64,000 bases of DNA, taken from assembly GCA_002269645.1 (NCBI GenBank), contig NIVC01001167.1, forward strand, positions 1 through 64,000, written 5' to 3'. Under the pieces are notes generated by a model that saw nothing but the letters and a program-made list of their open reading frames with translations, was not told the origin of the DNA and made no database searches. The position numbers and the translations under genes are program-made. The stretch comes from Macrostomum lignano (taxonomy: Eukaryota). Position 1 is the stretch's first letter. Each line of letters starts with the position of its first letter. Of this stretch, positions 7,967-39,677 are shown piece by piece.

Positions 7967-10900
7967 ATGAGTCAGTGGACGCAAATTTCGCACTTAACGC
8001 GAGTAGCCGACACTCCCAATGAGGACTTCTTGCAGTCGGTGCTTCAGGCGGACCCCGACAAGCTGAGGGCGCATCTGACCGGTGGTCAGTCTCCTGATCA
8101 GATGTTCAATTTTAACGGCAGCTGCCTGTCGCCGCTACATCTGGCCTGCATCACCGGCAACTACCAGGCCGCTCAGCTGCTCACCCGGTCCTCAAAGCAG
8201 CCAGAAGTGAACGTCAATCGTCAATCGAGTCACGGAGAATCTCCACTTTTTGTGGCCTCTGCCTATGGTCACGACAGGTTGGTCAGCAGCTTGATTCTGC
8301 AGGGTGCGAACGTCGATCTGCCTCAGAAACTCGGCTGCACGCCGCTCTGGGTCGCTGCTCAGAACGGGCACCGCGCTGTTGTACAGCTGCTCATCGAGGC
8401 TCAGGCCAACGTGAATCAGTCCAGAACAGACGTCCGGTCCACGCCGCTCTACATGGCCGCTCAGAACGGACACTGGGAAATTGTCACCCAGCTGGTCTCA
8501 GCTATGGCCGATGTTGACGCGCAGAAAACTGACGGCTGCTCGCCAATGTACATCGCTGCTCAGAATGGTCATCGGCAAGTGGTGGCTGCGCTGCTCAAAG
8601 CTCAAACAACCCTCGACCTGCAACAGGAGCGAGGCAGGACTGCCATCTACGCAGCTGCACAGGAAGGCCACGCGGAGGTTGTCGAGGTGCTCAGTCGGGC
8701 AGCCGCAGACGTCAATATTCAGCAAGTTGATGGTGCAACTCCGTTGCTCATCGCGACGCAATTCGGCCACCGTCAGATTGTTCGCTGCTTGTTGGAGCTC
8801 GGAGTTCCTGACGTCAATCTTGCCGAGTTCAGCGGTGCTACGCCAATGTACATCGCATCGCAGGAGGGCCATGTTGAGATAGTGAAGGCACTGGTCCAAG
8901 CCATGGCGGACATCGATCAGGCCATGCTGAACGGCAGCACTCCTTTGTACGCTGCGGTACAAAATGGACGCAAGTTGGTGGTGCAGGAACTCATCAAGGC
9001 GAAGGCAGCTGTCCAACCAGAAACGGCACACCTCTGCACACCGCTCTATGGTGCATTCTTCCTGGGCGATCGGTCTATAGTGGACAGTTTGCTAAAACTC
9101 GGAGCAAATCCAAATTTGGACTGTGGTATTTCCGTAATTCAGCCAGCGCTTCACGTAGCCGTACATTGCAACCAGCTGCCAATAGTACTCAGCCTCATTA
9201 AAGCTCAAGTTGACGTTAATCAAATTGGCGAGCTGGGCACAACAGCTCTGTACACAGCGGCGCAGGAGAACCACTGGAAGATTGCGCGTGCTCTGGTTGA
9301 AGTGAACGCGGATGCGGATGCCACGTCGCATCCGGAAGGCGCGGCACCGATTCACATCGCCAGTCAGTTGGGCCACCATCGAATTGTCCAACTGCTCGCT
9401 AAAGTCGCCCTGGCCGACGTGAACCTTCGGCTAAGCAGCGGGTGCACAGCTCTGCACCTGGCGTCACAAGCTGGTCACGCGGCTTCGGTAAAAATTTTGT
9501 TGAGCGTTCCTCAGATCGACATGAATCTCACAGACTCAACCGGCTGCTCGGCGCTGCTCGCTGCTTCGCGAGAGGGCCACACAAACACGGTGGATCTGCT
9601 ACTGGCTGCCGGAGCCGTCCCCGAGTTGAAGGCTCACGACGGAATAACGCCGATGTTGATTTCCGCACTGAATGGCCACAGGAAGGTTCTAGATAGGTTG
9701 ACAAGTTACCGTTCGACCATGAAACTCTCGGTTGATAATTATTTTCCGGCGTAAGTCCGAGCGGGCCAGTAGTAGATTTCGTTGAGATGCTTGCACCAGA
9801 ATGCGGAGGATTTCGCAGGGGGTTCCTAGCATTCCATTCCACTAACCCCTGGCGACCACGGGCAGCTGGTGCTGCGGTGTCTCGCAGGGAGATCCGGTGG
9901 TGCCAATATCCATAGCGCAATCTCCCTCCAGAGAGTCCAGGAGGTGAATAGTGCTCGCCCGGTAGCCCTTTGGTTGCGGATGAGCTGGCAGAGATTCTCA
10001 GTTTGGGCCGAAGTAGCTAGGTGTCAGCTCGTCCTGAGTAAATTCTAGGGGCATTCACAGATGAAATGCTCCGCATTCTCGACACCGGAGAGGCAAAATG
10101 GGGTGCTCAGGGGTCAGCGAATAGGTACCTTCTCACGGCTGCGACTTCCCTCCAGTGAAAATAAAATAACTGACGATAAACTTTCCATCCTTGATCAGGT
10201 CAACAGCAAGTGAGCAGAGTCTGCTGGTGCACCAGTCAATGCTCCGTGCTGGCTTCACCAGGCCCAGGGCGGCACTGCAGACTGCGGCTGCCGAGGTTCT
10301 GCAGGCAGCTGGTCTCTGCGCGCAGTCGGTGTGATAAAGAGAATAAAATATTTGTTATGGGCAGCTTTGCTGAAGGCTGGGGCAGCTGCATGGCCTCGTT
10401 AAATGGCGACATCGATCCAGACTCCGACATCGACTATTTGATGATTGACACAAACCAACTGTTTCACTTGAAGAACTATTGCCGCTGCAGGCATCCTGAT
10501 CCAGCTAGCGTTAAAAAAACTGTTGAATACTGCAACGGTGAAATTACCTGCGATGATTTTGGTAAGTGGAATTGCAACGTTCTTAAGTAAACCTTCTAGT
10601 CTATACTGTTGCTTTATAACTTTAATCTCTGTTAAAGCCCAAAGTTGACGGTTTTATCTCATTTTTAGCGTCAAATTGTTCTACAAAACATGTCGAAACT
10701 GGCAACAAATCTTTGGGGCCAGCGATTCACCTGGAGACCGCCCTCAGTCTGTGCTGCCATCCACCAATGGCAGTGTTGCAGTCTCAAAATGACTCCAACA
10801 TATCACAGAGGGTGCTGGACTTGCTCCGGCAAGAGATCACCTTAACGCCCTGTCATTTGGTACGTGCCGTATCTCCAGGATCTGCTGGCTCGCAGTTCCG

Positions 10901-11903
10901 CGTGAGCACAGCCTTTTTAGAGAGGAAGCTGATGCAAAATCTCACGACACTGCAAGGTCAGCTGTTCGTTATTATCAAATATCTGTTTAAACGAGTTATA
11001 AGCAACTGTGTGCCGGGCTTGAAAACATATCACGCCAAAACTCTCCTGTTCCGAATGCTTGAAGCGACACCGGCTGATCAGTGGAGACCGGAGAATCTCT
11101 TCAGTCTCACTCGACATGCCTTGCAGATGATGCTAAACTACGTTGAGCAGAGTTGCAATTCGAAGACATTCGATGGACAAATCATGAGGCACTTCTTTCT
11201 GAGTGATGCTGCCTTGTACTTGCAAGGACAAAGTCGGGACACAGCGATGAAAATTGCTCAATGCCTAATTGAGTTGATTCACCAACTGCCGTACATACTG
11301 GCAGAGTTCAACGATGGTCTTGCCAGCATTCCTGATTCTGAAAATTTCAGTTTTCATCCATTTCTACTGCTACCAACGCTGGAAAAGAAACCCAAGCCAC
11401 TAATTGAAGCTTCTATTGAAAAATTTGCTTTGGAAATTCAGTATCTCAGTATTTATGACAACGTGAAAGAAGCACTTGTTATGCTAGACGAAGACGACAC
11501 AAGCTCCGACTGTAGATCTGTCTTAGATGATGTCATTGCGCGCCTGCCTGACTGCGCCAGCAAAAGCCGAGAGACTCTGCGAGCTCTGTCTTGCATCAAG
11601 TTCGGCCGTCTGGAAGCTGCGTCAGAGGTGCTGCTGAGTAGCCGGCAGCCCGAGGTCCACCGGGGCATCAGCTGGAAGGAAGAGCTGTCCCAGTTTGAAC
11701 CAACCAAGGAGCTTGTCTGGCAGCACCTGAGAAGTCATGACTCTGCTTGGAAATTCCACTTGAAATTTGATTCACCAATAAAGTTTAACTTTTTGTCCGT
11801 AAACAATATTTTCTCGACCTGTCTGCTTATAAGCGGCAATGAAATTTATGTCAACTTCGAGGCTCTGCATCGCAGCCTCAGTGTGGCTCTGTGTCGGTCG
11901 TAA
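7967..11903 (+). CDS. Gene A: ankyrin-repeat / cGAS-like (Mab-21, cGLR) nucleotidyltransferase fusion, ~1126 aa, with a 1-nt frameshift near 10305
   Basis: Exons 7967-9750, 10199-10561 and 10669-11903. Exon 1 has 16 ankyrin repeats (TPLxxAAQxG). Its TAA lies in donor GC|GTAAGT at 9751; the acceptor CTTTCCATCCTTGATCAG ends at 10198, phase 2. The joined frame reads SLLVHQSMLRAGFTRPRAALQ, then GSFAEGW...DSDID. Intron 10562-10668 is GT-AG, phase 1. Mab-21 C-lobe motifs QGQLFVIIKYLFK, LKTYHAKTLLF and MRHFFLSD follow. Confidence 0.8.
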
Positions 11904-12505
11904 CTGGGCTGAGGAACTGAGGAACTGCTGACTCGGAGCATTGTCAGTGTTTGCTCAGAAAGTGGAGCGGCACCCTTGACAACTATTCAAGTTCGGAAAA
12001 CTTCAGTAGCTTCATAAAGTTTATTCCTTATTCGATGGAAATCTAAAGAAACTCAATCATCATGTCTAAACATCAAATTTAACCTTCTTTAGAGAAACTG
12101 TTTTCTTTTCTTTTAAAGAACCTATCATAAATTTTTACTTTTAAAAAGCAAATAAAAAGAACTAAATCATTTATTTTTTTGCTTTCGAAGCATGATGGGC
12201 TGGAAATTACAGACCAGTGATTGTTAAGTGACAAAGCTGCATTGTGTGTGCTGAATTGCTTGTTTATTTTTTTAGCTAATAACATAATTTGAACTCAAAA
12301 CTGTACAAAGTTTGAATTTGAAAATTGTGACTTTCAATAAGATTACGAGCTGAAACTTAGCGAGCTAGAATGAACAAAAGTTTATGACGGACGCATTCGC
12401 CTAAAAAGGCACTAGCTAGAGAAGCGATCGCTTACAAAGGACTAGACGGATTTGCATTTTCCTTGTATTCTACTCGCAGTAGTTTAACTCTTAGATTCAA
12501 CGAGC

Positions 12506-15500
12506 TCAGGGCGAGCCCGGAAAGTCCCTGCCGCTGCCGTAGCCGCTGCTGCTGTCCCAGCTGACGGTGGACTGAACCACCGCTGGCGGTTGACATCGAG
12601 GTCGACGGCGACGCAGGCTCGAGTCCGGGAAGCCGCCGCCAACTTGAAAGTCTCGCAGAAATTCGCAGTCGTCCGCGGTTTCGTCCGCGTCAGCGAGGGC
12701 GAACAAACTCAGCGACGCGTTGCCTAGCAACTGACTTGACGACGGGGGCGTCGCAGTGGACAGCAGCATCAACTGGGCCGTGCCGTCCTCGGCCTCCAGG
12801 CTGCAGAGGCGAAACCCGACCGAGGACAGCAGATCGTGACAGCCGTCGCGACGCCACAGCGTCGAAGGAACCGTCAAACAGGCGGCTGTCGTGGCTGCTT
12901 TCGACGCTTCGTCGAGCAGTCTGCCGAGACTCTCCAGACAGTCGCTTTCGCTGCCGACTGCAGCGAGGAAGCGACGCAGCGCCAGCACAGCGGCATCGGG
13001 GAGGCTAATCAGGGCTCGAACTCTGGCCCCGGCTGCCTCCAAGTTGGTTCCCAACCAATGATAAGAGGCTTGAGACTCTGTCGGCGCGGTTTCCAAGTAT
13101 TGTAGCAGAGACCTAAGGAAGCGACGAACTTCTACAAGCCCGACAAAGTCACCGCCAGAGTGCTGCTGCAGGCTTGCCAGAAGAACTTGTCGAAGCATCC
13201 AACTAGCAGAGCCAGTTACAGATGGTAAACGCGTCCCGACGTCTCCTAATAGGATTAGTGGGTTGCTAGGCACGCTAGTATGGTTTCCATGGTCAGCCGT
13301 AGCTGTTTTTACAGCTTCAGTGATTCTTCCACCGCCAAATTCACCGCTGCACGTGAGAAGCTTTGAATACACCTGACTGAGCAGGCTTGGCTTCAGGCAG
13401 ATGAGCACAGCTCGAGCTCCTGCAGTCAGCAGAGTCTCAGCTTGCCTAATCAGCAAGCTCAATTGAATTGAGTTCAGCGAAATAGCCGACTCAGTTGAGC
13501 AGCTGATCACCACGAGTCGAGCTGCAATCGTCAGATGCTCGGTCTCTAAAACATCTGCAGTTGGAAAAGTTCCCATACTGATGTGGATGACTTCTTTTGC
13601 ATGAGATGCCAGTTGCTTCAACTGACACAAGGGCCGGTAGATGCAGGCTGCTGGGCGTTTTTCTCCACTGTCAGGGCTGCCCAATAAGAATTCGTTTGCT
13701 TGTTCTTCCTCTCTGTCTGTTAATGCTAGCAATCGACAGGTGGGTTCAACTGCAGGTGCCCTAGAAGTTCCCCGCTGCAGCTTCCTCCATCGTACGCAGT
13801 GGCTCAAACTGGGCGCCATGGCAACTGAAACTTGTCTATCTAGCAGTCCAGTCGTCAGATGGATTTTCAGCATCCTCTCAGCGTCGCAAACCACAGTCAG
13901 CCTTTGAATGAGTTCTCTAGAACTGCAAAGAGCCCGAGTCAGTTCTCGTACTGTCGAAGTTACAGCTTCTGAGCTAGCGGAGTCAACTTTTGCGCTCCTG
14001 CCAGTCCAGCCTCCTCGCTTGAACGAAGTCAGGAGCCAGACCAGCAGCTGGCGTTCGCCCGCCCAGCTGATGCACAGCACAGCTTCCCTATCATCCAGGT
14101 CAGTCAGCAGCACTTCTACCGCATCCGCATCCATATCTAAGCAGGTGCCATCGAGCGCCAAATGCAGTCGCCGTTCAAACTGCTCCAGCGCGCCCCGCCA
14201 GTCGCCCAAAGCTGCCAGGATTCGCTGCAGCCCGTCGAGACACTCGCCTAACGCAGCAACGTCGGATTGTTCATGGTCGAAACTGCCAGTCTCTTCGTTA
14301 CTCTGTCTATTCAGCGTCTTCAACTGCCCATCAGTCGCTAGTATCAGAGCATTTCGAGCCTCATCAAGACGGCCCAGCTGCTCCAGTGCAAGTCCGCGTT
14401 GATGATTCAGTAGCAGCAGCGGCTGGCGAGAAAGCTCCGGGGAGCAGTCGTGCTCACAGTTGGATTGATCGTCAGCGTTGCCTTTCGAAAGCTCAATTGT
14501 CTCCAAGGCGGCCTGGGCGTCTCCAGCCTTGCGCTGACTCTCAGCCAGCGCTGCTCGCGCTCGAAGGCGCCCAGAAGGCATCGGCGCAGCTGCCAGCGCT
14601 GCTCGTTGCCAGGCGACCGCTTCGGACCGGCGGCCAGCGAGCAGCCGCGCCCTGCCCAGCCAGCCGGCGGCGGCGGCCTCGCGCGAGCGGCAGCCGACCC
14701 GACGAGCGGCGGTCAGCTGAGCGGCGAAGCAATCGCCGGCTGATTGAAGGTCCGGTGACTCGGACGACTGCAACAGCAGCAGGCGGCCCATGGCTTCGTA
14801 GGCATCGGCGGTAACTGCGTCAGTTGTGGCGCTGGAGACAGCGGCTGGTCTCGCTGCAGAAGCCATTGACAGGCATTTTTCGGTGCAGAGCAGAGCCTGC
14901 TGAAAGTCTCCGCACCTCTGATGACATTCAGCCAGCTTGATGAGTATGACAGTTTGAGCTAGCCATTTAATTTCCAAGGCGCTCTTTGAAATATTTCGCT
15001 CCTCTGAAGTTGCAGCGACGCTGCAAGCCTCGCAGGAGCAGCTCGAACTGTTTCTGATCGCTTGCAATCCGGCAATTCCCGCAGCTCTCTGCGGTGCCGT
15101 CCAGTTGAATGGTTTCGATGACTCACTTTCGTCAGTTGAGTTCAATACGCCTAGACAGCGCTGGTAGCAGCTGACAGCTCGTCCTTTCTGACGCAATCTT
15201 TGATAACAATCGCCCAGCATAAGCAGCAAGTCGGCCTTGAAGCATTCAATAATTCCGTGTTGGTCCCCAGTTTCTTTGCTGTCAAGCAGGCTTTGCAGTC
15301 TCTCCAGTTGCTTTGCAGCCTCGGACCAGTGCTTCGCCGACATCAGCGCTGCAGCGAGACGAAATACTGCTGTCGAATCAGAGCCTTCGCTCACTTTAAC
15401 CGCGTCCCGATGGCAGCGCAGGCAGGACGCCACGTTGCCCACGGCCAGGTTGACATCTCCGAGGTCTCCCAGCGCAGTCTGCAGAAGCTTCGGGCATTCA

Positions 15501-18500
15501 GCAAGTCGAGCCGCTTCAAGAGCCGCTTGTTGATGGCGTAGAGCTCCGGGCAGGTCGCCAAGGCGCTCTCGCACCGCTGCCAAGCCTGACAGAGTCTTCG
15601 ATGTCTGCTTTGAGCAGCCGGCCTCGGAGCAGGCAGCCAGGCTCAGCTCCAACGCTGTTTCAGCCTCTGGAAATCGACCCTGAAGCAGCAGAGTTCCAGC
15701 CATTCCCCTGTTTGCTTTCGTCATTTCAAGCGGAGGTATCGGACCCGGCGTCTGCGAATCTCGGTAGCAGCGTTCAGCATCAAGTAGATTACCGCATTGC
15801 AATTGAAGACTTCCCAGTCTACGGTATGCTCGTGCCTTAACTTTGCAGACCGTTTCATTGTCACTGGGGCGGGTGGCCGGTCCAGACAGGGCCGATAGAA
15901 GGTTCTTGTACGCGTCCAGCACAGTTTGAAGATCGCCTGACCGAGTAAACCCAGCCCGCACGCTCTGCCAGAGAGTGTCAGCCAGGCAATCGAGCGAGTC
16001 AATTCGGCTGTTGACGCCTGTCGATAAATCCGCGAGTTGACGCGCAAACTGCAGCGCATCTGACCAATGTCCCAGCGATCGACAGCTGCTGACCAAATCT
16101 TTCAGACAGGCACTCTTCTGATGATGGTCAGCGCGCAGGTCGTTGAGCAGCGATAGGCGCTCAGAGTGTCGGCGCAAAGCGGCTCGATGCTCGCCTCGAG
16201 CAGCCTGACAACGACCTGCGAAGGATGAGATCAGGTTGGAGGGGTTTTAGGTTGTCTCAAAACACTTTCACCAATTTTTGAGTAACGTTAATCCAAAATA
16301 TCATGGATTTTGATGAGTAAAAACTGCCTGCGAGAGATAAAGTAATTATGGGGTGGGTGTGCTCACTGCCTGCGAGAGATAAGGTAATTATGGAGTAAGT
16401 GTGCTCACTGCCTGCGAGAGATAAGGTAAATTATGGGGTGGGTGTGCTCACTGCCTGCGAGAGATAAGGTAATTATGGAGTAAGTGTGCTCACTGCCTGC
16501 GAGAGATAAGGTAATTATGGGGTGGGTGTGCTCACTGCCTGCGAGAGATAAGGTAATTATGGGGTGGGTGTGCTCACTGCCTGTGGACTTGTTAGTTATT
16601 CTCGTGTCATTTTATTTCCGCCAGAAATAACGGCTTAAATAAACCACAAGTTGCTCGTGTTTCGTTCGATATTCATTTAATTTTTTTACTTATCAAACCC
16701 TTTTTTAAACTATTTAAACGGTAAAGTTGGAAAGCTTTAAAAACAATTTTCGTCCTGGTCGTAATTTCGAAATTCATACGTTTTTTCCTACACAAAGCAT
16801 ACCGTAAAAATCATAAATTGTCTTCGTCATAAATTCGCGTGCTTCACATTTTTCAAAGCCCTACTGACCCTGCTAAAGCACCCCCGGCGGGAAGGCCGTT
16901 GCATCAATTTTTTCTTTTATCTCTTCGCTCTCATTTCGCCATCTCGCCGGCTCCGCTACGGCGACGTGACTAAAAGAATCAAAAAAGCAGTTGCGATTCT
17001 GGTGCTGCGTACATTTAAGAAGATTTCATATTTTACTCGGCCTCATTTGTCTCCTGCGTCTTTGCTGCTTGGGGAGGGGTTGGGCATCTCTGCAACCCTC
17101 AGTGGGAGCCAGAAGCGCTCTTAAAAATTGGGAAACAAACAGGCGGCATCCATTAGCCTCTGTTGCCGACAAAGAGAAAGGAGGAGAGGAGGCCAACTTT
17201 GACCAGCGTCAGTGCGTGGCGCATCAGAACAGACGAAAGCTAGAGGCAGAAGGAAATGCAATGCGGAAATAAGGGCCAGGCGTGCCCCCGATTCTGAACG
17301 GCGAATAGAAGTGCAGCAGAGTGAAAGATTTTTTGAGGACACGGACATGGCTACGACGCTTGGTATGCTGCTTTGACCTGGATTGTGTTGACATGCGTAG
17401 GACTAGCAGTTTTGCTGAGGGATTTAGAGGGTAATGCTGAGGTGTTTTGATTGAGGTCGAGTGGGTGATGCTGTGGTGTTTTGATTGAGGTCGATTGGGT
17501 GATGCTGTGGTGTTTTGATTGAGGTCGAGTGGGTGATGCTGTGGTGTTTTGATTGAGGTCGAGTGGGTGATGCTGTGGTGTTTTGATTGAGGTCGAGTGG
17601 GTGATGCTGTGGTGTTTTAATTGAGGTTGAGTGGGTGATGCTGTGGTGTTTTGATTGAGGTCGATTGGGTGATGCTGTGGTGTTTTGATTGAGGTTGAGT
17701 GGGTGATGCTGAGGTGTTTTGATTGAGGTCGATTGGGTGATGCTGTGGTGTTTTGATTGAGGTCGATTGGGTGATGCTGTGGTGTTTTGATTGAGGTTGA
17801 GTGGGTGATGCTGAGGTGTTTTGTTTGAGGTCGATTGGGTGATGCTGTGGTGTTTTGATTGAGGTTGAGTGGGTGATGCTGAGGTGTTTTGTTTGAAGTC
17901 GATTGGGTGATGCTGAGGTGTTTTGATTGAGGTCGATTGGGTGATGCTGTGGTGTTTTAATTGAGGTTGAGTGGGTGATGCTGAGGTGTTTTGATTGAGG
18001 TCGAGTGGGTGATGCTGTGGTGTTTTGATTGAGGTTGAGTGGGTGATGCTGAGGTGTTTTGATTGAGGTCGATTGGGTGATGCTGTGGTGTTTTGATTGA
18101 GGTCGAGTGGGTGATGCTGTGGTGTTTTAATTGAGGTTGAGTGGGTGATGCTGTGGTGTTTTGATTGAGGTCGAGTGGATGATGCTGAGGTGTTTTGATT
18201 GAGGTCGAGTGGATGATGCTGAGGTGTTTTGATTGAGGTCGAGTGGGTGATGCTGTGGTGTTTTGATTGAGGTCGAGTGGATGATGCTGAGGTGTTTTGA
18301 TTGAGATTGAGTGGGTCATGATGTGGTGTTTTGATTGAGGTCGAGTGGGTGATGCTGTGGTGTTTTGATTGAGGTTGAGTGTGTGATGCTGAGGTGTTTT
18401 GATTGAGGTCGATTGGGTGATGCTGTGTTGTTTTGATTGAGGTTGAATGGGTGATGCTGTGGTGCTCCATGGCTGGTTGAGTGGGGTGATGCTGTGGTGC

Positions 18501-19633
18501 TCCATGGTTGGTCGAGTGGGTGATGCACAACTCACCGATTTCTCCGAGAGCCTCAGCCGCTGCCTCCTTGTCCTCCAGCCTCTGCGCTGTCTGCAGCTTT
18601 GTCTGAGACAGCTTCTCGGCCTCATCCGACACCGTGGATTCTGTAGAGGACTCGGACTCTCTCGCATTGCGCCAGTTTTGCTGCCCAGTCTGCCGCTGGC
18701 TGAGCATCGAGTTTCGGGTATCCATGCGGGTGTGAAGTCGTCCCAGTGTTGACTGCTCAAATGCCGAATTGGATGACAGTCTGGAGTTCGAATCCTGTTG
18801 GCAAAGTCTCAAACGGCGTCGCTCGAAACGCAACGCCTCCGCGCTGCGTCCCAGGGCTGAGAGGGCGGCGATCAGGTTGCCAAGGGCGCGGCTCTGCTCA
18901 GCTGAGTCGTCTGCGAGAGGCAGTTGAGGATGAAATCGGGAATCTTTTGAGATAACTGCCAAAAAACGTAGTTATGGGGTGGGTGTGCTCACTGCCTGCG
19001 AGAGATAAGGCAATTATGGGGTGGGTGTGCTCACAGCCTGTGGACTTGTTAGTTATTCTTTCGTTCGAACTTTCCATCGTTCGTTCGAACTTAATCAACT
19101 GCCTTTACTTCCTCTTAACTACAGGCGAAGTGCTTATCTTGCAGTGCGTGATTCAAGCCATATTCCCAAATTGCCATGGCCAGCCACTCCAGCCCGATAT
19201 CCCATCTCAGCTAAACTGGGGAAATTTGCAATTTTGTACTTTCATATCTGATTGACAACTGGTCCACTCCATGGCATACGGGCCAGTTTACTGTGCCACA
19301 GCAGGGCTTTCTGGGTGAGTCAGCAGCTCCAAGGACATTTTTGGACTGCGGATACCTACTTTTATTGTGAACGGTTGGGTTGCTAGGAGGGGCTGGAATG
19401 GAGGGAGCGGATGAGAAGCAGGATAAATATTTGCTCCAATGCGAAACCCGAGACTTTATGCGCCTGGAATCTAAACTGCCTGGAGTTTGGAGCTTTTTTC
19501 CTGAAGTATCAGGTTTGCAGGCTTTTGAATTCTCACTGAGTTAATATCTAGCCTGTCTGTCTGTGTGTCTGTCTGTGTGTCTGTCTGTCTGTCTGTCTTA
19601 GTGTCTGTCTGTCTGTCTGTCTGTCTGTCTTAG

Positions 19634-19714
<81 letters not shown>

Positions 19715-22700
19715 GTGTCTGCCTGTCTGAATGTCTGTCTGAATGTCTGTCTGTCCATCTGACTGTCTCTTAAACCTATTTTTATAATTAAATGGACACT
19801 AAGAACTCCATTCTAAGCAGACTCTCTCTCTACTCTCTATCGTTCTTAAAAGTTCTCAAATCGTTAAAACTTTGTAAAGCAAGCCTGCAACTCATGTTTC
19901 TCCATTTCTCTCCAAGTCTTTGCGGCCATGCTACACGTGTAGAAAGCACTTTAATCCAGACATTTCCTCTTCTATCTCTCGTGGCGCGGCTACAGAGGTC
20001 AGAGAAGGACCAGCAGCCACCCGCGTACACAGCAGTTTTAATGACACCCCGGGAAGCCATGCAGATATACGAACGACAGTGGCTGACATGTTTGGTCCCT
20101 CAGGGACTTGGAAAATCCTGCCCAATACTGCCCAGTTTTATTGTTATTATCCGCAACTCATTGAGGCACTTGGGGCATTGGGCACAGTTTCGGGTTGTAG
20201 TTTTTTAGATAGGGGGTCAGGGCGATTTTTATTTGTTTGCAGAGGGGGGCGCGGATCAAACAATGGAAGCGTTGGACCGAAATGTTGGAAAGTTTTTTAT
20301 GAATTGAATCTATAGAGTGAAGGAAGGTTCTCAAGGTGGAAATATGGGGTAAGGCAGAGAATCTTTTAAAGGGTAGCAGCGAGGGAACAGAGGGTAGCAG
20401 AGAGGGGGAAGAGGGTAGCAGCGAGGGGATAGAGGATAGCACAGAGGGGATAGAGGGTAGCAGAGAGAGAAAGAGGTGGCAGAGAGGGGATAGAGGGTAG
20501 CAGAAAGGGGATAGAGGGTAACAGCGAGGGGATAGAGGGTAGCATAGAGGGGATAGAGGGTAGCAGAGAGGGAAAGAGGTGGCAGAGAGGGGTAGAGGGT
20601 AACAGCGAGGGGATAGAGGGTAGCATAGATGGGATAGAGGGTAGCAGAGAGGGGAAAGAGGGTGGCAGAGAGGGGAGGAGGTTAGCAGAGGGGGACAGAG
20701 GGTAGCAGAGAGGGGATAGAGGGTATCAGAGGGTACAGAGGGTAGCAGAGGGGGACAGAGGGTAGCAGAGAGAGGGTACAGGCGAGCAGATACTAGCACA
20801 GAATAGGTAGAGGGTAACATAGAGGGTGACAAATCGGCATAAAACTCACTGCAGCTCTCGGCCAGCTTCAGGTGACGCCTCATGCAGTCCAGGGCGGTGT
20901 CCCACCGCCCCAGCAGCCAGTGCGCCCGCCCAAGCGACGCGGTCACCGAGCAGCGCAACCGGGTCTGCGGCTCCTGACCGCCGATCCTCAGAGCGCACTC
21001 GAGGCAGACAGCGGCCCGTCTGGCGTGTCCGGCCGCCAGCAGCTCCTGACCGATGACGGAAGTCAAGGCGAAGGCGTCTTCAGACAGGCCGAGGTCGGCC
21101 AGCTGGTCCAGCGTGCGGGTGAACGAGGCTAAGGGATGAGGATTAGAGTATTGAAGGGAGTATTGTGAATGAATGGATTATCGTTAATTAATTATTATAA
21201 AATAACAGAAAAAGATTACCTAGAAAGGATTTTCACAAATGGATTATCGTGAAGGGATTATCGTGAAGGTATTATCGTGAAGGTATTATCGTGAAGGTAT
21301 TATCGTGAAGGGATTATCGTGAAGGGATTATCGTGAAGGGATTATCGTGAAGGTATTATCGTGAAGGGATTATTGTGAAGGGATTATCGTGAAGGTATTA
21401 TCGTGAAGGGATTATCGTGAAGGTATTATCGTGAAGGTATTATCGTGAAGGTATTATCGTGAAGGTATTATCGTGAAGGTATTATCGTGAAGGGATTATC
21501 GTGAAGGTATTATCGTGAAGGGATTATCGTGAAGGTATAATCGTGAAGGGATTATCGTGAAGGGATTATCGTGAAGGTATAATCGTGAAGGGATTATCGT
21601 GAAGGGATTATCGTGAAGGTATTATCGTGAAGGGATTATTGTGAAGGGATTATCGTGAATGGATTATCTTGAAGGGAATATCGTGATGGGATTATCGTGT
21701 AGGGATTATTGTGAAGGGATTATCGTGAACGGATTATCTTGAAGGGAATATCGTGATGGGATTATTGCAGGAGCGATTAGTTTGAAGCGATTACATGGTG
21801 AATGGATTCTGCAATGAGATTTTCAGAAGATTGTAAAAATCCGCCCCTTTAAAGGAATCCTCAGCCCACCTGCAATGGGAGAGTTGAGCGCCCCATCCAC
21901 CAGGTACCGGAGGCTGCGGCTATCGGCTGTGGAGTCGCTGCCCAGTAGTTGGCAGATCACGGCGGCAGTTTCAGCAAAGTCAGCCAGAGCTGCGGCAGAT
22001 TCCGAAGCGCCTTGGCGTTGAACTGCGGAGGCTGCCGTCGACAAAGTTGATGAAGAAGCTGAGCCAAGCATGGACTGTGCGATTGATGGGGTGGAGTGGA
22101 GGGGATTAAAAAATATTAAAAACCTGTCATACCTGGCATACCTGTTATACCCAATACCAAAACCTGTGATACTACAGGGATGCCTGTGGTATCCAATATC
22201 AGGGACACCTGTGATACCTGTTTACGAGTATCTGTTATTCCTGTTTATCTGTGATACCTGTTTACCTGTGATGCCTGTTTGCCTGGGATACCTGTTTACC
22301 TGGGATACCTGTTTACCTGGGATACCTGTTTACCTGGGATACCTGTTTACCTGGGATACCTGTTTACCTGGGATACCTGTTTATCTGTGATACCTGTTTA
22401 CCTGTGATACCTGTTTACCTGGGATACCTGTTTATCTGTGATACCTGTTTACCTGTGATACCTGTTTACCTGGGATACCTGTTTATCTGTGATACCTGTT
22501 TACCTGTGATACCTGTTTACCTGGGATACCTGTTTATCTGTGATACCTGTTTACCTTGGGATGCCTGTTTATCTGTGATACCTGTTTACCTGGGATACCT
22601 GTTTACCTGGGATACCTGTTTACCTGGGATACCTGTTTATCTGTGATACCTGTTTATCTGTGATACCTGTTTATCTGTGATACCTGTTTACCTGGGATAC

Positions 22701-26726: not shown

Positions 26727-27449
<723 letters not shown>

Positions 27450-29771: not shown

Positions 29772-31410
29772 TGTATCTCTAATAGATAATCGGCTTAGCT
29801 TAATAATCCGCTCAGTCGCGGTGGCCGTCTTCAGTACGACGTATATTTTCATACGGTTACAGTCACGCGTATAATTGTCTATGACCAAAGCCACACAACT
29901 AAGGCTGGGGATACACCATCTCCCCTTTCAAAGTTCAACTATCATAGGTTTTCCTCCTATAGGTCAACCTGTAGCATCTGAGGTTTCTTAGTCTCTCGGC
30001 CGAATCGGGTCCTCCTTGGCTCGGCCGACCCTCCGGATGCTCCAGGCATGCCTTGCTCGGTAGCACCGTCCGCGGCGGTCTTCTTGGCCTCGAATGGGCT
30101 GACTGGGATCCGCTTCCTGATGAACTTGCGGTTCCGCCGTAGACATCTCCCACTCGCCAGTCGAATCATGAAATCTCGGTTCCGTCCGGCTTCCACGATC
30201 ACGCCGTACTTGTCCCATCATCCGGTGTGACAGTCCTGAACCACCACTCTGTCATGCACTTTGATGTCCGGCAGGGGCTGAGCGTCTTGGTTGTAGTATT
30301 TCTCCGTAGTCGCCTTGACTCTAGTCTGCTTCTCCTCGATCTCAGCTGCAGATTTTTGCCATTCAGGTGCGAACGCTCTTCTGTGTGCCGGAATCGTGTC
30401 ACGAATTGAGTGGCCGAACACTGTTTCAGCTGGGGACTTGCCGTCGTATCTTGGAGTGTTGAGATAGACTAAGAGGCCTTTTGACAGTTTCTCCCAATCC
30501 AGCGTGCCAGCCTGATGGTTACAAGACCCTCTGACGATCTTCTTCATTTCTTTCACCACAGCTTTGGCGCGTTCGTTGCTCTGTGGATAATGTGGAGACG
30601 ATACTCGGTGTTCGACGTTCCAGCGTGCTAGTAGGAAATCCTTGAAAATTTTTGCGTTGAATTGTGGACCGGCGTCTGACCAGAAAATGTCGGGGACCGA
30701 TTTCTCGACGAATCTCTGTCGGATAGCACTGACGACTTTGGTTGCGGGTGTGTCATCGCCAAGGTAATTGAGAGCTGCCCAACCGGATAGGCCATCCACG
30801 ATGACAAGGAAATTCTTCCCTGCATATTCAAATAGATCCGCGTAGATCTCTTGGAAGACTCGTTCCGGTGGCTCTCGAACGACCATGGGTTCCTTCGCCA
30901 GGCTAGGAAGATTTTCTTGGCATGGTTTGCACGTCTTAGCGATCTGCTCGATGTCGTTGATCAGGCCAGGCCAGAAAATGCTTTGCCTTGCTTGCTCCTT
31001 CATTTTGTGGCATCCCTGGTGCATCTTCAGGAGATTTTCGAGGACGCTTCTCCTTAGCTTCCTAGGGATCAGTAGCCGTCGTCCAGCCAGGATAAGGTCG
31101 TCTTCGACGCAGAGTTGTTGCCGTAGGTGCCAGTACGCACGGATATTCTCTTGGAGGTTCGCCTTGCAGTTTGGAAAACCATCTAGGATTATCTTCTTGA
31201 GAAGCCGATATTCTGAATCACGGTTTGCTGCTTCGGAGATTTCTTTCTCCGACTGCAACAGAGCGTGCACTGAGCTGATAGCCTGCTCCGTGTCGTCGAA
31301 TTCCATGATCTGATCGCTCGCTTTAGGCTCCTCCACCGGCGCTCTGGACAGTGCGTTAGCGTCATCATTTAGCTTGTACTTGATCCACCGAGCATTGATG
31401 CACCAGCTGG
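29772..31410 (-). mobile_element. Ty3/Gypsy LTR retrotransposon 3' fragment: integrase, PPT and short 3' LTR
   Basis: ORF 30218-31522 has ANALSRAP, zinc finger HQG..H..C..C (WPGLINDIEQIAKTCKPCQ) and rve core IYADLFEYAG / SDAGPQF / SSPHYPQSN; the catalytic Glu region is degenerate (SNERAKAVV). PPT GAAAGGGGAGATGG at 29929-29916 is followed by TGTAT...ATACA (29915-29772). No gag, protease or RT is present. Confidence 0.85.
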
Positions 31411-31992
31411 GGTCTGGTGCGCCACCAATTTTCTCTCCAAATTTTCGCTCCACAAGTAAACTGAATTTAGCATTTTCAAGTTTTCCTTTAATCTTCAGTC
31501 TTGATTTTTTCGGGGTCATCACATGGCCGAGTCATTGACACACCTTGAATGCGCTAGAGCTATTGCGGATCCCTGCAAGGCTTTGGGGTGGAGTACGGCG
31601 ATACAGGAAATTAGTACCCTGCTACATGTACACGTGTCTTTCTGCACAGTACTGAAAATATAAGAAAATATTAGATAAGATAGAGAGCTGTAGAGAGAGA
31701 GAGAGAGAGATTCATAAAGTCTGTTTATATTCACAGCTTGGATAAATTAGAAAAATAAAAAATACATGCATTCGAGCTAAAAGCTGTTTTACCCAGATAC
31801 ATATAATTCTTGCTGCCTTAGAACACAACAGGTAAAGTTGAAATACGACTTTTCTTTATTATTTCCATAGACATTCATGGAAAAGTAACTAACTTTATTA
31901 GTAGCAGAAGCCTATTCTACCAATTTTGAAACTTATGTGGCACAAAAAACGTTTAACGAGTCAATTAAAACAGTCGAATACCCAGTGTGTAC

Positions 31993-33132: not shown

Positions 33133-36100
33133 ATGCCAGATCTAATCAGGGCCTACGTCTTAGGTCGGAGACGCTGGAGGATTAAAATTTGGAATTCTGG
33201 TCGAATACAAAAGTCTTCTGGAAGAAGGCATCCCGCCACTCAGTTTGTTATTTATGTGGTGTTTAACAAAAACTCTGTCAAAAATCGATTGACGTCAGCT
33301 TTAGCATTTACTCGGATAAAGAATATTGATTTTTTTGCTTGCCAAGTGTTTGATACAGAATCAGTGCTGACTGTCGCTAAAATTGGTCGTTTGAAACTGC
33401 TCGACTCAATCAGATCCCAACTAATGGACACAGGACTATGCTTAGAGGCTGCTAAATGTGCCGCACAGTTTGGTCGTGTGTCAGTTGTGCGCTGTCTGTA
33501 TTTAAAACTGCAAAGAGAATTTATTGACGAATTCTGCATTGAGACAGCGAAATCTGCGGCCACATATCACCAGTGGGAAATTGTTCAACTCTTGATGACG
33601 TCCACTCTGCAGCACTGGCGATCGGATGAGACTTCGCTGACAGTCGTGAACCTGCCGACCGAGGAGAGCATGTTTGCAGACTTCTGCATGGTTGAGTTCA
33701 GAGACACGCCAAGTATGAACATGATAGAGATGATGAAGTTTCTGCTTCAACAGATTTCTGACATCCCGGACAGGAATCGGTGCTGCCTGGAGGTGGCGAA
33801 ATTTGCTGCTAAGAAAACCGAATGGGAAGTCGTGAAACTTTTAGTAGCCAGCGTTACAGACTGCTTTGCAAGAGATCAGTGCTTCTTTGAATTCATAGAA
33901 GATGTCGCAGTAAAATGCGAGTGGAGCACCCTGAATCTGTTTCTGCACTGTATAATAAAAGACGATCTAAAGAAGATTTCCTGTAAGAAAGCAGTGTCTG
34001 CCGCTTCAACAGTAGGAAATTGTGAAGTTCTAAAGCTTTTTAAACAGATCGTGGTTGATTCTACGTTGAAATTTCATTGCTGCGCGGTTTTCGTAAACGG
34101 AGTTGCAGAATGTGGCGATTCTAAGATAATAATTTTGCTGCTCGAGCAGATTTCTGATGAACGTCTGCGAGATCAGTGCTGTTCTGAAGGGGCAAAGTCC
34201 GCTGCCAAGTTCGGGCATCTGGAATTGTTGAAACTATTGTCTCGGGAAATTACTCACCCGGAGCTAAAAGAGACTTGCTACGTACAAGCTGTGAATGCCG
34301 CTGCAACAGAACGCCAGTGGGAGTCTGTGGAGTTCCTGCTGAAGGTGGCATGCGATCAAACCATGAGGGTCAAATGCTGCACAAAGGCTGCTAAGTCGGC
34401 AGCAAGATTTGGAAATTTAAAGATTCTTGACTATGCTGTTAATTTGATATGCGACTTAAATTTCAAAGATAGCTGCTGCTTACAGGCAGCGCTGATTGCT
34501 GCAGATGAGCATCAGTGGGAAGTGGTGAAATTTCTTGTGCAGACTGTGACAGACAGAAATGTGAGAGATCGGTGCTGCATGGAGGCAGTGAGGCCTGCTG
34601 CACGAGACAGTCAGTGGAAAGTGGTGAAGTTTCTGGTCCAGACCATTTCTGACCAAAGCCTGAGAGACCAGTGCTGCATTGAAGCGGCAAAATCTGCAGC
34701 AATCAACGGTGTTTTGAAGGAGGTGAAGGTCCTGGTGCATACAGTCGCTGACCAAAAATTGAGAGATCACGGTTGCAAGGAGGCAGCGAAATCTGCTGCA
34801 GTCAATGGGCAGTTGGAGGTGGTAAAGTTTCTGGTTCAGACAGTCGCTGACCAAACAAACAGAGATCAGTGCTGCATTGAGGCAGCAGTATCTGCTGCAA
34901 GTGAGGGTCAGTGGGAAGTACTGAAGTTTCTGGTGCAGACAGTCGTTGACCAAACAAGCAGAGACCATTGCTGCATTGAGGCAGCAAAATCTGCTTCAAG
35001 CAAAGGTCACTTCGGTGTTATGAAATTTCTGATGCAGACAGTCGCTGACGAAACAAAAAGAGATCAGTGCTGCACTGATGCAGCGAAATCTGCTGCAAGA
35101 AAGGGTCGGTGGGAAGTGGTAAAGTTTCTGGTTCAGTCAGTCGCTAATCAAACAAACAGAGATCAGTGCTGCATTGAAGCAGCAGGATCTGCTGCAAGCG
35201 AGGGTCAGTGGGAAGTATTGAAGTTTCTGGTGCAGACAGTCGCTGACCAAACAAACAGAGATCAGTGCTGCATTGAGGCAGTGAAATCTGCTGCAAGCAA
35301 TGGTCAGTGGGAAATTGTGAAGGTTCTGGTGCAGACAGTCGCTGACCAAACAAACAGAGATCAGTGCTGCATTGAGGCAGCAAAATCTGCTGCAAGCAAA
35401 GGTCAGTGGGAGGTGGTGAAGTTTCTGGTTCAGTCAGTCGCTGACCAAACAAACAGAGATCAGTGCTGCATTGAGGCAGCAAAATCTGCTGCAAGCAAAG
35501 GTCAGTGGGAGGTGGTGAAGTTTCTGGTTGAGTCAGTCGCTGACCAAACAAACAGAGATCAGTGCTGCATTGGGGCAGCGAAATATGCTGCTGAAGAGGG
35601 TCAGCTAGAAGTCGCGAAGTTCTTCATCTCATGTATCTCAAGTCCGGATCCCAAAGCGAATCTCCGTTTCCAATATGCAGTCGCGGCTTGCTCTCGTCTT
35701 CATGAAGATGTCGTTGCATCCCTCGGCCTCGAGCCCGACTGGCTCTTCCAATCCAGCACCATCCTCAGCTTCACTGCAGCAATGGCCATCGAAGGCAGGA
35801 ACTCTGTTCTCACCGACACCCTCTCTCGAATGCAGCCAGCTCACATCACACAGCTGCTTCGTCTCTCCATCTCTCAAAGACACGTGGCTCTTGCTGTCAC
35901 ACTGATCAATGATGAGCGAGTCAGCACACAGCATGTCGATCTGCCAGACAGCACTGGAGCCACTGCTCTCATGCTGGCAGCTGATGAAGGTCATCACGAG
36001 CTCATTGAGAAACTCATCGATCTCGGTGCGTCAGTGCGTGCTAAAGACAGTCAGGGTCGGACTGCTCTGTCACGAGCGTGCGAAGCCGGTCACGTGCGAG

Positions 36101-39100
36101 CAGCCAAGGCTCTGATGGACAGAGGAGCGGATGCGAGTCATCGAGACGGTCGGGGTCTGACGTGTGCGCAGGTGGCACAGCGATTTGAGCAGCGGCAGGT
36201 GCTCCGACTTCTTGAACAGAATTCAGTGTGAGGATTATAATGTTATTATCGGAGCTAAAAGTCCTTCTAAAATGAAAATAGGCAGTTGCTTATGAAGTAT
36301 TTGCACTTTAGTTGGTCTGGAGATGGCCTGCATGGTAGGTCTTAGAATCCCACCGCTGCCACCAATGTCGTGTCTGTTGGCTTCCTCAGGCTGTCTCGAA
36401 AGGGCTGGCAGATCTTCTAGCTCCTGGCGGAGGCGTCTAGCTGGCGGTTTCTTAGAAACTAGTTCTCGTAGCGTAGGTAGTGCTGCCACCAGCTTCGTAG
36501 ATTCGCAGCCTTTGGTGAGGTGCTGAGCTCGTAGAAGCAAATAACTAGCAATAACTAGCAGTTCTCGAGCAGAGGCGTCCACAGTCAGCAGTCCCTGCCG
36601 GGCTGGTGCGGGGTTAGAGCGATGGTGCTAGCTTCGGGCGATCTGAGCTGGCCCGCTAACAGATAGCAGGAACAATTAGAAGCAGGCACTCGCAAAGTCG
36701 GGAGTCTTGGAGTTCAAACTTAGGCTCAAACTTGGCACACGAACTTGGCTTGAAACTGAGAGACAGGTGAAACGGTGAGGCAGAAAAGGGGACGCGCTTG
36801 TCTGAGCCAAGCCATGAGAGGGACTGCATTTATAGGGAGCATCGTTTGCACCATATCACAAAATGGTGCAATCGATGCGCGTCATAGATGACGCTGTTGC
36901 TATTTTTAGCAACAAGCGAGCGGGTTCCGCCTCAGAAGAGGAGACAGGGGGTCCTGACGCACGTGATGTCCCCATAAACACGAGCCCAGTGCACAATGAG
37001 GAAATCATTGTACTTTGGACTAATAAGACAGAAGAGGCTTGTCATGTGACTGGCTCACACGACAAGGGGAAAAGGGCCCACAAGTGAAGGCACTCGTGAC
37101 CTTGGGACCGGAAAACAGAACGGCACTCCAGATTTGGAGGTGCCTAACAGAGACGAAACAGAGGCAGGCCAGACCAAGCTGTCTGGGCACTGCAAAACGA
37201 GAACACGAGACAAAAAGGGGCAAACGAGGACAAACAGACAGACAGGCAAACGGGCAAGGGACAGGCCAGAGGACAGGCGAGAAGGGACAGACAACTGCCC
37301 AGCGGCAGACAGAAGCCTGGGGCGAGGGCGAGGAAACCAGCTGACTAGTGCGGCGCCTAACTAAATAGCGACTCACTACACTTAGCATCTTATCAGTCTT
37401 ACTCATTTGCCAATTGTAGCAGAAACTTTATGGAAACCTTAGAAACTTTATACGTTAGAGTTAATAGTTGACTGCCAATTGAGAATTGCGTAATCTTCTT
37501 TATAAGTATTTGTCAGGGTCAAAGACGACACTCGGAATGAGAGGCAACTCAGCGAAGAGCATTCCAAGCTCTCAGACGACTCCCAGCAAGACAGGCGCCT
37601 GAGCGAAGAGCTTCATCGACTGCTTAGCGAGGCGGGATTCACCAGGGAGAGGGCGGAGTGTCAGCAGAGACTGGCTGACTGGCTTGAAGGAGTCGCTCGA
37701 GTCCTCACACAGGATGGCATGCAGATAACGGGAAGCTACGCAGAGGGCTGGGCCAACAGTCTGGTGCAAGTGAACGGCAGGACAGCTGCAGACTCGGACA
37801 TTGACTGGACTGTGCTGGTTTCTGGGCAAGAGTTCCACCTGGAAGGTGGCTGCGAAAGATGGAAGGACTCCTGCAGATATGCCACTCGGCTGCAAGTCAA
37901 GGAGGGCCACGCACAGGTGTCTGTGGGAGCAGGTGAGTGAGGCTGGGTTTAATAAATTCCGGACAATGTTTTGGTAGTTCATTGTGATGACGAGAATGAA
38001 GAGAAATGTAAAATTTTACAGCTAATTTCATTGCAGTAGATTAACAAGTGAAGTATTTGAAACAAACAATTCAGGAAATCAACCAACCGTGACAGCAACT
38101 GCATGCGGTGTGAGGCCTGCTCAAGACATCTGCCAGGCGATCCAGTGCTGCAGCAGTTTCTGTCAAAGCAGAGTTGAGAGGCTTCTCAGCTATCAGGATA
38201 CGAACGTTCACCTTGTCAGAGCGACCAGACCGAGCTCGACCAACGAGCTCAGAGTGAGCTTCAGCTTCCAAGAGAAAGAAATCATGAGACAGATGAGCAC
38301 AGTACAGGGCCAGCTGTTCACACTCATCAAGTTCATCTTCAAGAGACACTTGCCGCTCACTCTGGACACACCTGGACTCAAAACCTATCACGCAAAAACT
38401 ATGCTTTTCTTCATGCTGGAAAAGCATGGCACATATAGTTGGCGGAATGAGGCTTGGCAACCCCAATATCTGATCGCTCTGCTCAAGGAGTCTCTCGACA
38501 TGATGCTGAGCTTCATCAACTCAAACACTTCGCCCGATGAGTGCATGCCGCACTTCTTCATGCCCGACGCTCCGCTCTACTTCAAGAACGCTGGAATCGG
38601 CGGCGACTTTGACAACACGAAGGCGAGGGTTCGAGACCGACTTTGTGAGATGAGAAGCGACATCGGCGGAGTGGTCGAGCAGCTGAGGAGACTCGTGAGA
38701 CCTCTGCAGTCAGAGAAGTTCTACTTTCACCCGTTCACTCTGCTGCCTCTGACAGCGCCGCCTGCTGTCACGGAGATCAGGGAAAGAAGTAACTATCTGG
38801 AAACTTGCAAGTTTGCAGACGTGTACAGTGTGGTGCACCAGTGTGTGAGCGAGCTGCAGTCGGAATCGAGCGACAGAGACACCCTGATGAGGCAGCTCAG
38901 TCTCCTGCATGAGCTGCAGTGGTGCAAGTGCGCCGCCCTGTGCATGACCGCCATGGCGCATTTGAAGTTCGAAGAATCTGAGGAGGCTGAGAGATTCGCC
39001 ATGGAGCTGCAGAGACATCAAGTTGAGTCAGGGTTGAAGCCACAGGATATTCGAGATGAGAGTATAAGCAGTGGAGAAAAAGAGAAAAACTGCCAGAAGA

Positions 39101-39677
39101 CTCAGACTGGGCGTGGAGGTTCTGCCTCCCCTGCGACTCTCCGCCTCGCTTCCCATTCCTTCCCGAGTTCACGCAGACTCTGTTCACAGCCAGACTGTCG
39201 CAGCCTCTCTCCTCCCACCTGTACGTGAACTTCCGCTGCCTGAGCTGGAGTCTCCAAGCTGAGCTGCTCCGCAATCGCGCACCTGCAATCGCATTCGATC
39301 ATTGGATTGAGCAGCTGCTTGGAGACCCGGACTTGGAGGAGCTGCTTACTCTGGCTCACTACAGCGACTGCCGCGAGCACGTGGAGCTCAGCCTGCAGCA
39401 GATGGAGATGATCGAGAAAGAGAGACGCGTCGCCATGGAGACGCAGGACGAGGAGAAGATCGGCTGGGTCAGGCAGAAGCGGTGGCGAGTTTCGAACGGC
39501 AGCGGCAGCGACAGCGGCGCTCACCGCAGCAGGAAAGATGAGGAGCGGAGGCTGTGGGCGAGGGCGAGGTTGCTGCGAGACGGGGCCGACTTGGGGGGTC
39601 TGGTTGCCATGGAAACAGCAGTAGAGCAGTTAGACAGCTGGACTCACGCCAAGCTCAATAGAATGAAACTGCAATGA
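33133..39677 (+). CDS. Gene B: Cys-Cys ankyrin-like repeat + canonical ankyrin / cGAS-like (Mab-21, cGLR) nucleotidyltransferase fusion, ~1700 aa, with a 1-nt frameshift near 39061-39090
   Basis: Exons 33133(or 33424)-36227, 37517-37932 and 38075-39677. The TGA of the 1032-aa ORF lies in GT|GTGAGG at 36228; acceptor TATTTGTCAG ends at 37516, phase 2. The frame is open into LSEELHRLLSEAGFTRERAECQQRLADWL..GSYAEGW..DSDID. Intron 37933-38074 is phase 1. Downstream: PAQDICQAI, QGQLFTLIKFIFK, LKTYHAKTMLFFMLE, CMPHFFMPD. The start codon is uncertain. Confidence 0.85.
36241..37380 (-). mobile_element. Putative solo LTR or similar insertion in intron 1 of gene B
   Basis: The minus strand begins TGTAGTGAG and ends GATAATAACA, with a TATAAAT box at 36834-36828. 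No target-site duplication could be found. Confidence 0.4.

Follow-up and report, generated by a model that had tools for sequence, protein, structure and literature searches.

Two ankyrin-cGAS-like nucleotidyltransferase genes of Macrostomum lignano, additional and possibly defective members of an expanded family

Two genes joining ankyrin arrays to a nucleotidyltransferase

The stretch of Macrostomum lignano DNA analyzed here (contig NIVC01001167.1, 64,000 nucleotides, hereafter the window) contains two loci, gene A and gene B, in which exons for an array of ankyrin (ANK) repeats precede exons for a nucleotidyltransferase (NTase) related to cGAS and the Mab-21 proteins. They are the only NTase loci that tblastn detects in the window and both are read on its plus strand. 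The evidence presented below supports that each locus is one gene fusing an ankyrin array to an NTase of the cGAS/Mab-21 fold. The two genes are diverged paralogues, approximately 31% identical in the NTase, and they share the same layout: a large ANK exon, a phase-2 intron, an NTase split by a phase-1 intron and a C-terminal extension of about 250-300 amino acids (aa). Fusions of ANK repeats to cGAS-like receptors (cGLRs) are neither hidden nor new, and the loci of the window add two members, possibly defective, to a known group.

The first exon of gene A (7967-9750, with an ATG at 7967) belongs to an open reading frame (ORF) of 595 aa that encodes about 17 canonical ankyrin repeats (Pfam Ank_2 E = 4.7e-104, 9 stretches). 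This ORF (7967-9754) ends in GC|GTAAGT, its stop codon (TAA, 9752-9754) lying within the splice donor. The first intron, as read from the sequence, spans 9751-10198 (448 nt, GTAAGT...CAG, phase 2) and its acceptor at 10197-98 is pyrimidine-rich (ctttccatccttgatcAG). The peptide encoded across the junction, ...DNYFPA|STASEQSLL (DNYFPA|STASEQSLLVHQSMLRAGFT), is identical in P0050, a transcript-derived protein of 833 aa whose gene maps to contig NIVC01000038.1 of the Mlig_3_7 assembly (stretch L001). The Mlig_3_7 annotation combines RNA-seq, processed with StringTie and TACO, with a mapped de novo transcriptome (PMC5730564), so this junction is transcript-supported in the sister copy. The second exon (10199-10561) encodes the N-terminal helix of the NTase together with its GS (10360-10365) and DSDID (10420-10434) motifs. 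It is followed by an intron of 107 nt, also read from the sequence (10562-10668, GTAAGT...TAG, phase 1), across the position of which P0050 reads CDDFA|SNCSTK. The third exon (10669-11903) comprises the rest of the NTase, the Mab-21_C lobe (25.5 bits in Pfam, cut-off 24.1) and the C-terminal extension, and is 97.8% identical to P0050. The gene of P0050 is the syntenic sister of gene A, with identical exon junctions and an NTase that is 96% identical.

In gene B, the first exon (33133-36227) encodes about 22 divergent ankyrin-like repeats of 33 aa, together with a linker and 2-3 canonical ANK repeats, its start codon being uncertain. Pfam Ank families match the whole of this 1032-aa ORF (Ank_2 E = 3.6e-46), and the divergent 99-bp repeat array is recognized even on its own (Ank_2 E = 1.9e-37). 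Part of it was also delimited by Tandem Repeats Finder as a 99-bp (33-aa) tandem repeat of 10.9 copies and 81% identity (34512-35591, plus strand). Tandem 33-residue ANK repeats are found in both genes. The ORF (33133-36231) ends in GT|GTGAGG, again with the stop codon within a splice donor, and the simplest in-frame join removes a phase-2 intron of 1289 nt (36228-37516, GTGAGG...CAG) with a pyrimidine-rich acceptor at 37515-16 (cttctttataagtatttgtcAG). The resulting frame is open through GSYAEGW (37731-37751) and DSDID (37791-37805). The length and sequence of the linker between the ANK array and the NTase vary widely among the family members compared, and the locus of the paralogue P0020 (stretch L002) has a phase-2 donor, a 54-nt micro-exon between its ANK and NTase exons (L002 12035-12088) and a different acceptor. 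No homologue of this micro-exon was found inside the first intron of gene B. Given the variable linker and the micro-exon of P0020, the exact ANK-NTase junction of gene B stays a prediction, and a micro-exon may be present there as well. The second exon (37517-37932) encodes the spine helix of the NTase, with GS at 37731-37736 followed by DSDID, and is 79-83% identical to M. lignano paralogues (tblastn). The second intron (37933-38074, 142 nt, GTGAGT...CAG, phase 1) has a counterpart of the same phase in the P0020 locus, and the phase-1 introns of genes A and B occupy equivalent positions in the N-lobe of the NTase, within 1-3 residues depending on the alignment. The third exon (38075-39677) carries the third catalytic Asp (38125-38127), the Mab-21_C lobe (26.8 bits, same cut-off) and about 300 aa of C-terminal extension specific to the family. 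The motif LKTYHAKT is present in genes A and B alike.

The splicing pattern proposed in the first-pass annotation, which was made from the sequence of the window alone, could be read again at both loci: the ankyrin ORFs do end inside donors (at 9751 and 36228), the pyrimidine-rich acceptors do end at 10198 and 37516, a second, phase-1 intron interrupts the NTase at the equivalent position in genes A and B as well as in P0020, and in gene B the phase-2 join leads in frame to the NTase. Its claim of the same in-frame join in gene A is only half right, as the junction matches that of P0050 but the frame entered there stops at 10332, before GSFAEGW.

Fold, active site and family of the two proteins

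The two genes combine strong ANK matches with Mab-21_C scores above the Pfam cut-off. No match to the Pfam N-lobe model (PF03281) was obtained in either gene A or gene B. The bilobal cGAS/Mab-21 NTase fold was recovered from profiles and structure prediction. An AlphaFold2 model of the core of gene B, based on 24 diverse family sequences, reached a predicted local distance difference test score (pLDDT) of 83.5 and a predicted template modeling score (pTM) of 0.88; the first model, based on 7 sequences, had a pLDDT of 55 and was discarded. When the retained model was compared with the PDB using Foldseek, the top matches were all cGAS, with Sp-cGLR1 in rank 27 and MAB21L1 in rank 32 (probability 1.00, E ~1e-9 to 1e-7, TM ~0.45-0.61). 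A profile restricted to the NTase (alignment A3) retrieved mouse cGAS (2e-5), cGLR1 (PDB 8gjy, 4e-4) and, weakly, MAB21L1 from the PDB. The search made with alignment A2 returned ankyrin proteins only, since that alignment retained the ANK columns. In hhalign, alignment A4 matched mouse cGAS with a probability of 96%, the aligned part being the C-lobe. The ankyrin-cGAS/Mab-21 fusion announced in the first-pass annotation thus finds agreement among Pfam, the NTase profile and the gene B model, and the structural comparison that it called for, in which a different fold would have counted against it, led to cGAS, Sp-cGLR1 and MAB21L1.

The closest structural relatives differ from the flatworm proteins in several respects. 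Vertebrate cGAS has the same fold (Foldseek E ~4e-9, TM ~0.6), the C-lobe motifs (R)LSFS..EK, Y-H-x-K-T and H-[FY]-F, and the same layout of GS, acidic pair and Asp. Nevertheless, the identity is only about 14%, the flatworm proteins lack the N-terminal basic tail, no cGAS-type Zn-ribbon was identified in them, and they are extended N-terminally by an ankyrin array and C-terminally by about 300 aa. Sp-cGLR1 (8gjy) resembles gene B in structure (E = 3.5e-8, TM 0.54) as in the profile search, but it comes from another phylum, is about 15% identical and is a stand-alone sensor of double-stranded RNA with a defined product. Published cGLRs also include NTase cores joined to protein-interaction modules. 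MAB21L1 (PDB 5eog/5eom) shares the fold of gene B as well (E ~4e-8, TM 0.45). According to Li et al. (PMC9980059), Mab21L1/2/3 have no predicted functional active site, whereas gene B and most of its family keep one; in this respect gene A is like MAB21L1.

Across the aligned family, G47, S48 and D69 do not vary and D71 hardly does. The catalytic set made up of GS, [DE]SDID and a third Asp is kept in 33 of the 36 family domains. The third Asp, likewise found in 33/36, lies in a motif RPAxD followed by A..CC.[YF]P that resembles D-I-x-L-A-L-E...W-P of cGAS. Gene B retains the full set, and its catalytic residues are invariant or nearly so among 24 relatives. In its predicted structure, G47-S48 come after strand 1, strand 2 begins with D69-I-D71, and D132 falls in the strand 129-138. 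Two further properties of the NTase were considered. The isoelectric point of the core (7.7 in gene B, 6.6 in gene A and 8.95 in mouse cGAS) was discarded as a hint of nucleic acid binding, since the family spans 6.1-9.5. In the N-lobe of gene B, H82, C86, C94, C138 and C139 (window ~37830-37870 and 38140-38150) form a His/Cys cluster that is conserved or near-invariant in the family. This cluster may bind a metal, and its position differs from that of the cGAS Zn-ribbon.

Genes A and B display the features that characterize a clade of M. lignano proteins: ANK repeats, the NTase, a C-terminal extension with the motifs FYFHPF..., DWAWRF... and YVNF, and the phase-2 and phase-1 introns (alignments A1 and A4; exon maps of P0050 and P0020). 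Clustered at 50% identity, at least about 30 representatives combine ANK and NTase; they were drawn from the best 150 of 571,890 matches in a profile search with alignment A2 dominated by ankyrin proteins, so the latter total says nothing on the size of the NTase family. The 20 cluster representatives looked up with an organism name were all from M. lignano, a free-living flatworm, as were all named homologues of the NTase region. Although the first-pass annotation described the two genes as hidden and noted that automatic annotation could split them, public annotation already joins ANK and Mab-21_C in single proteins for many paralogues (e.g., P0001, P0003, P0008, P0014 and P0020) and for the sister of gene A.

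The novelty that the same annotation implied does not stand either. Li et al. 2023 (bioRxiv 10.1101/2023.02.22.529553 / PMC9980059) list ANK-cGLR fusions as an architecture, with M. lignano entries among them. In their Table S2, Ank_2 is assigned to six M. lignano cGLRs (PAA67649.1, PAA58690.1, PAA68676.1, PAA86972.1, PAA45980.1 and PAA68216.1), and five M. lignano NTase constructs were purified (#89-93, Table S3). M. lignano is absent from their Table S5 (supplementary file 5). These entries come from the same species, have the same architecture and share GSYAEGW, DSDID, RPAQD and LKTYHAKT with gene B. The NTase of gene B is 83% identical to construct #93 (PAA68676.1) and 80% to #92 (PAA93208.1), and for gene A the identity with the five constructs is 30-36%. 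Compared with the published entries, the copies in the window are distinct loci, both have frame breaks and the array of 33-aa repeats is longer in gene B; compared with the constructs, gene A lacks the third Asp. No study dedicated to cGAS, STING or cGLRs in Macrostomum emerged from literature searches.

Several other members of the family have unusual architectures. P0052 (PAA59752.1), P0185 (PAA80948.1) and P0064 (PAA93319.1) carry, after the NTase, C-terminal ANK repeats and a caspase domain (Peptidase_C14, E ~1e-25 to 1e-27). Besides the gene A lineage, they are the only members with degenerate motifs, which in these proteins read DCDMN / E-S and TNDIN / T. By their domain order they are fusions of a dead cGLR-like domain with ANK and caspase, unless the transcript models have been merged. 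P0030 (UniProt A0A1I8GXZ3) contains two complete NTase domains in tandem, and P0023 (A0A1I8I4L5, 2381 aa) combines WSC, ANK, NTase and RING finger domains, which may also reflect a merged model. The sole relative found without an M. lignano label is P0010, encoded on a JGI metagenome contig of 3238 bp; across the C-lobe and the extension it shares 60% identity with gene B, and its source may be another macrostomid present in an environmental sample.

Frame breaks and the state of the two copies

The reading favored here is that genes A and B belong to an ANK-cGLR family greatly expanded in M. lignano. It is considered probable, a judgment that applies jointly to family membership, the three-exon structure, a ligand-gated mechanism such as that outlined in the last section, and the defects of the individual copies. 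Its gene structure, fold, family membership and catalytic-residue state are observed, and the mechanism would be the part drawn from other cGLRs. Several points weigh against this reading. In gene A, the frame set by the acceptor runs through the conserved helix (MLRAGFTRPRA) into a TGA at 10332-10334, ahead of GSFAEGW (10360), and the third catalytic site is a His (10728-10730, GPAIHLETA instead of RPAxD). In gene B, the frame of the third exon shifts between ~39062 and 39085, in the C-terminal extension, and the annotated M. lignano proteins are at most 84% identical to it, which leaves the expression of this copy unsupported. The catalytic assignment in the N-lobe is based on the motif pattern and predicted topology rather than on a residue-level superposition, as the hhalign match to mouse cGAS covered the C-lobe only. 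Finally, constructs #89-93 have no entry in the column of Table S3 (Note) that marks active enzymes, none of the 15 named active enzymes of Li et al. is an M. lignano construct (PMC9980059), and no nucleotide product has been reported for any enzyme of the M. lignano ANK-cGLR clade.

As assembled, neither copy in the window encodes a full-length protein, since each has one frame break, contrary to the intactness that the first-pass annotation took for granted. In gene A, three-frame translation places GSFAEGW in the +1 frame relative to the acceptor frame. The DNA alignment locates the break at ~10304, where the window has CAGGCAG and L001 has CA-CCAG, one base fewer, and P0050 reads straight through this site (AAAEVLHQLVPARSRCDKENKIF). 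In gene B, the reading passes from ...DESISSGEKEKN (...GLKPQDIRDESISSGEKEKN) to KLPEDSDWAWRF... (KLPEDSDWAWRFCLPCDSPP...YVNF...), which remains open to 39677. This end coordinate, given in the first-pass annotation, tacitly assumes the frame change at ~39062-39085. The change is supported by tblastn (frame 1 to frame 3), three-frame translation and DNA alignment to L002. It is equivalent to one base and falls in an A-rich stretch (GGAGAAAAAGAGAAAAAC), within a linker of variable length among paralogues, in a region where the window is 26 nt longer than L002.

The nature of these breaks can be approached through the comparison of the window with Mlig_3_7. Positions 14-16583 are collinear with L001 (97.9% identity over 16.6 kb, with collinearity continuing beyond), and the window represents the same locus, whether as a different assembly or as a different haplotype or homeologue. 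The similarity is a mosaic: 0-2 substitutions per kb and many 1-bp insertions or deletions (indels) across 2-9 kb, against 6-26 substitutions per kb and zero indels across 11-16 kb. This pattern points to a switch of haplotype from one assembly to the other, together with residual indel errors in Mlig_3_7. The ANK exon of gene A differs from L001 by five 1-bp indels and no substitutions in 1 kb, and these indels explain why the P0050 model begins at an internal Met. In the near-identical part, the window keeps long ORFs, namely the 595-aa ANK exon and an intact rhodopsin-type G protein-coupled receptor of 590 aa (3535-5307, minus strand) that is called at 299 aa in Mlig_3_7. The window accordingly looks like the better assembly, the demonstrable errors lying in Mlig_3_7.

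A first alternative is genuine pseudogenization of one or both copies, which would be decaying within a large family of fast turnover and would have ceased to act as receptors. This is a serious competitor, rated slightly short of an even chance. Each gene has a frame break, and that of gene A is no mere homopolymer change but a complex difference (GG vs C) in a part where the assemblies differ as haplotypes or homeologues do (~12 substitutions per kb); where they differ only by indels (2-9 kb), it is the window that looks more accurate. Gene A has also lost the third catalytic Asp, transcript-derived proteomes contain no protein at least 90% identical to gene B, and the surroundings include an integrase ORF and a satellite. 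On the other hand, each gene is interrupted only once, and apart from that its ORFs remain long and clean (595, 396, 1032 and 379 aa). The break of gene B is situated in A5 runs, a classic site of assembly error. Moreover, gene A and its sister copy differ by 11 synonymous and 15 non-synonymous codons, which gives a ratio of non-synonymous to synonymous rates (dN/dS) of roughly 0.45; the counts are small, but the ratio is not neutral, and the constraint on gene A is relaxed without being plainly neutral.

Alternatively, both breaks could be assembly artefacts, genes A and B encoding full-length ANK-cGLR proteins. This seems possible, with a somewhat lower probability than decay. One-base indel noise is demonstrable at this locus, as the ANK exon illustrates, Mlig_3_7 reads through at the site in gene A, and the break of gene B falls within a homopolymer-rich stretch. 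Nevertheless, the demonstrable errors belong to Mlig_3_7 and not to the window, and the noise is not uniform, being nil across window 11-16 kb. For gene A, the apparent quality of the window and the complex difference at 10304 make the evidence lean towards a real frameshift, as far as the alignment goes; the A-run context of gene B would fit a real change as well as an error. No credible small intron that would mend the break of gene A was seen (only weak GC donors), and an alternative acceptor at 10217|10218, which keeps the GS frame, was rejected since it turns the conserved LHxxLxxAGFTxxRA helix into an out-of-frame peptide. Given the break before GS and the His that replaces the third catalytic Asp, gene A is probably catalytically dead, and it may be a pseudogene allele.

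A third possibility concerns gene A and its sister, which could be non-enzymatic scaffolds or adaptors of the Mab-21 type, like MAB21L1 or the degenerate NTases fused to caspases. In its favor, the His occurs both in the window copy and in P0050, and the fusion of the other degenerate-site members (P0052/P0185 and P0064) to ANK and caspase domains indicates that the family tolerates non-catalytic uses of the domain. It remains rather unlikely: although the catalytic triad of gene A is incomplete, its GS and DSDID are intact, a site with two carboxylates and a His could keep some activity, and gene A has no effector domain.

The frame change of gene B might also be removed by a micro-intron of 35 nt (GTATAAG...CCAG, 39062-39096), yielding ...GLKPQDIRDE|KDSDWAWRF and a single open frame to 39677. 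This is very improbable, as the other four introns here measure 107-1289 nt, chance alone supplies many frame-restoring GT/GC...AG pairs in this interval, and in the transcript-derived P0020 the homologous GTATA forms part of a translated exon. Lastly, that the ankyrin and NTase ORFs are separate genes, as they appear in a mechanical list of ORFs, can practically be dismissed, because the stop codons lie inside consensus donors and because dozens of transcript-derived paralogue models, as well as the sister copy of gene A, join both parts.

The ORFs neighboring genes A and B are ordinary animal genes. Between the two, the minus strand carries an intact TPR-repeat ORF of 1223 aa without NTase domain (12506-16177), which shows 40 synonymous and 29 non-synonymous differences in codons relative to its copy in Mlig_3_7, two ORFs with weak TPR matches (17424-18962 and 20158-21066) and a fragment of a retroelement integrase (30218-31522, 434 aa) with its zinc-binding (H2C2) and rve core domains. 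A fragment of a DEG/ENaC channel (amiloride-sensitive sodium channel, ASC) is found downstream of gene B (42748-43593, plus strand). A 37-bp satellite (AGTGACTGACAGCCTGACAGCTCCCTCATGAACATTC, at least 45 copies) starts 266 bp past the stop of gene B and occupies window 39943-41500 and beyond; it also flanks the paralogous locus L002.

Possible function of the ANK-cGLR family

Characterized cGLRs are inactive at rest and synthesize a nucleotide second messenger upon ligand binding (Li et al., PMC9980059). By analogy, an intact ANK-cGLR would rest inactive until its ligand is bound, possibly by the fast-evolving ankyrin array, and the enzyme would then use GS, D69-x-D71 and D132 to make a nucleotide second messenger for a receptor. 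The ankyrin arrays are the obvious candidate for the ligand-binding module. Gating of second-messenger synthesis by an array that binds a protein, as put forward in the first-pass annotation, would be one form of this hypothesis. In gene B, the variation among the 33-aa repeats (a small sample) is concentrated at positions 5, 9, 13 and 14, of which 13-14 are the "AAxxG" positions, which are ligand-facing in canonical ANK proteins. From their 81% DNA identity, these repeats seem to be young.

A bolder scenario can be imagined, in which the expansion of ANK-cGLRs in Macrostomum constitutes an NLR-like repertoire of receptors whose hypervariable arrays recognize ligands that are proteins and not nucleic acids, the output being either a nucleotide signal or the activation of caspases. 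This scenario is doubtful. If it were true, the nucleotide signal would be read by a non-canonical receptor, or the dead members fused to caspases would activate the protease directly, and the near-identical 33-aa repeats of gene B would represent a recognition surface in the course of recent diversification.

By themselves, these two loci add little, since the architecture had already been catalogued and the copies are perhaps broken. The family nonetheless deserves attention: there is no ANK-cGLR with a known ligand or product, and flatworms are otherwise reported to have mostly lost their cGLRs. As M. lignano is amenable to transgenesis and RNA interference, a protein-sensing cGLR or a link between cGLRs and caspases would be directly testable in this animal.

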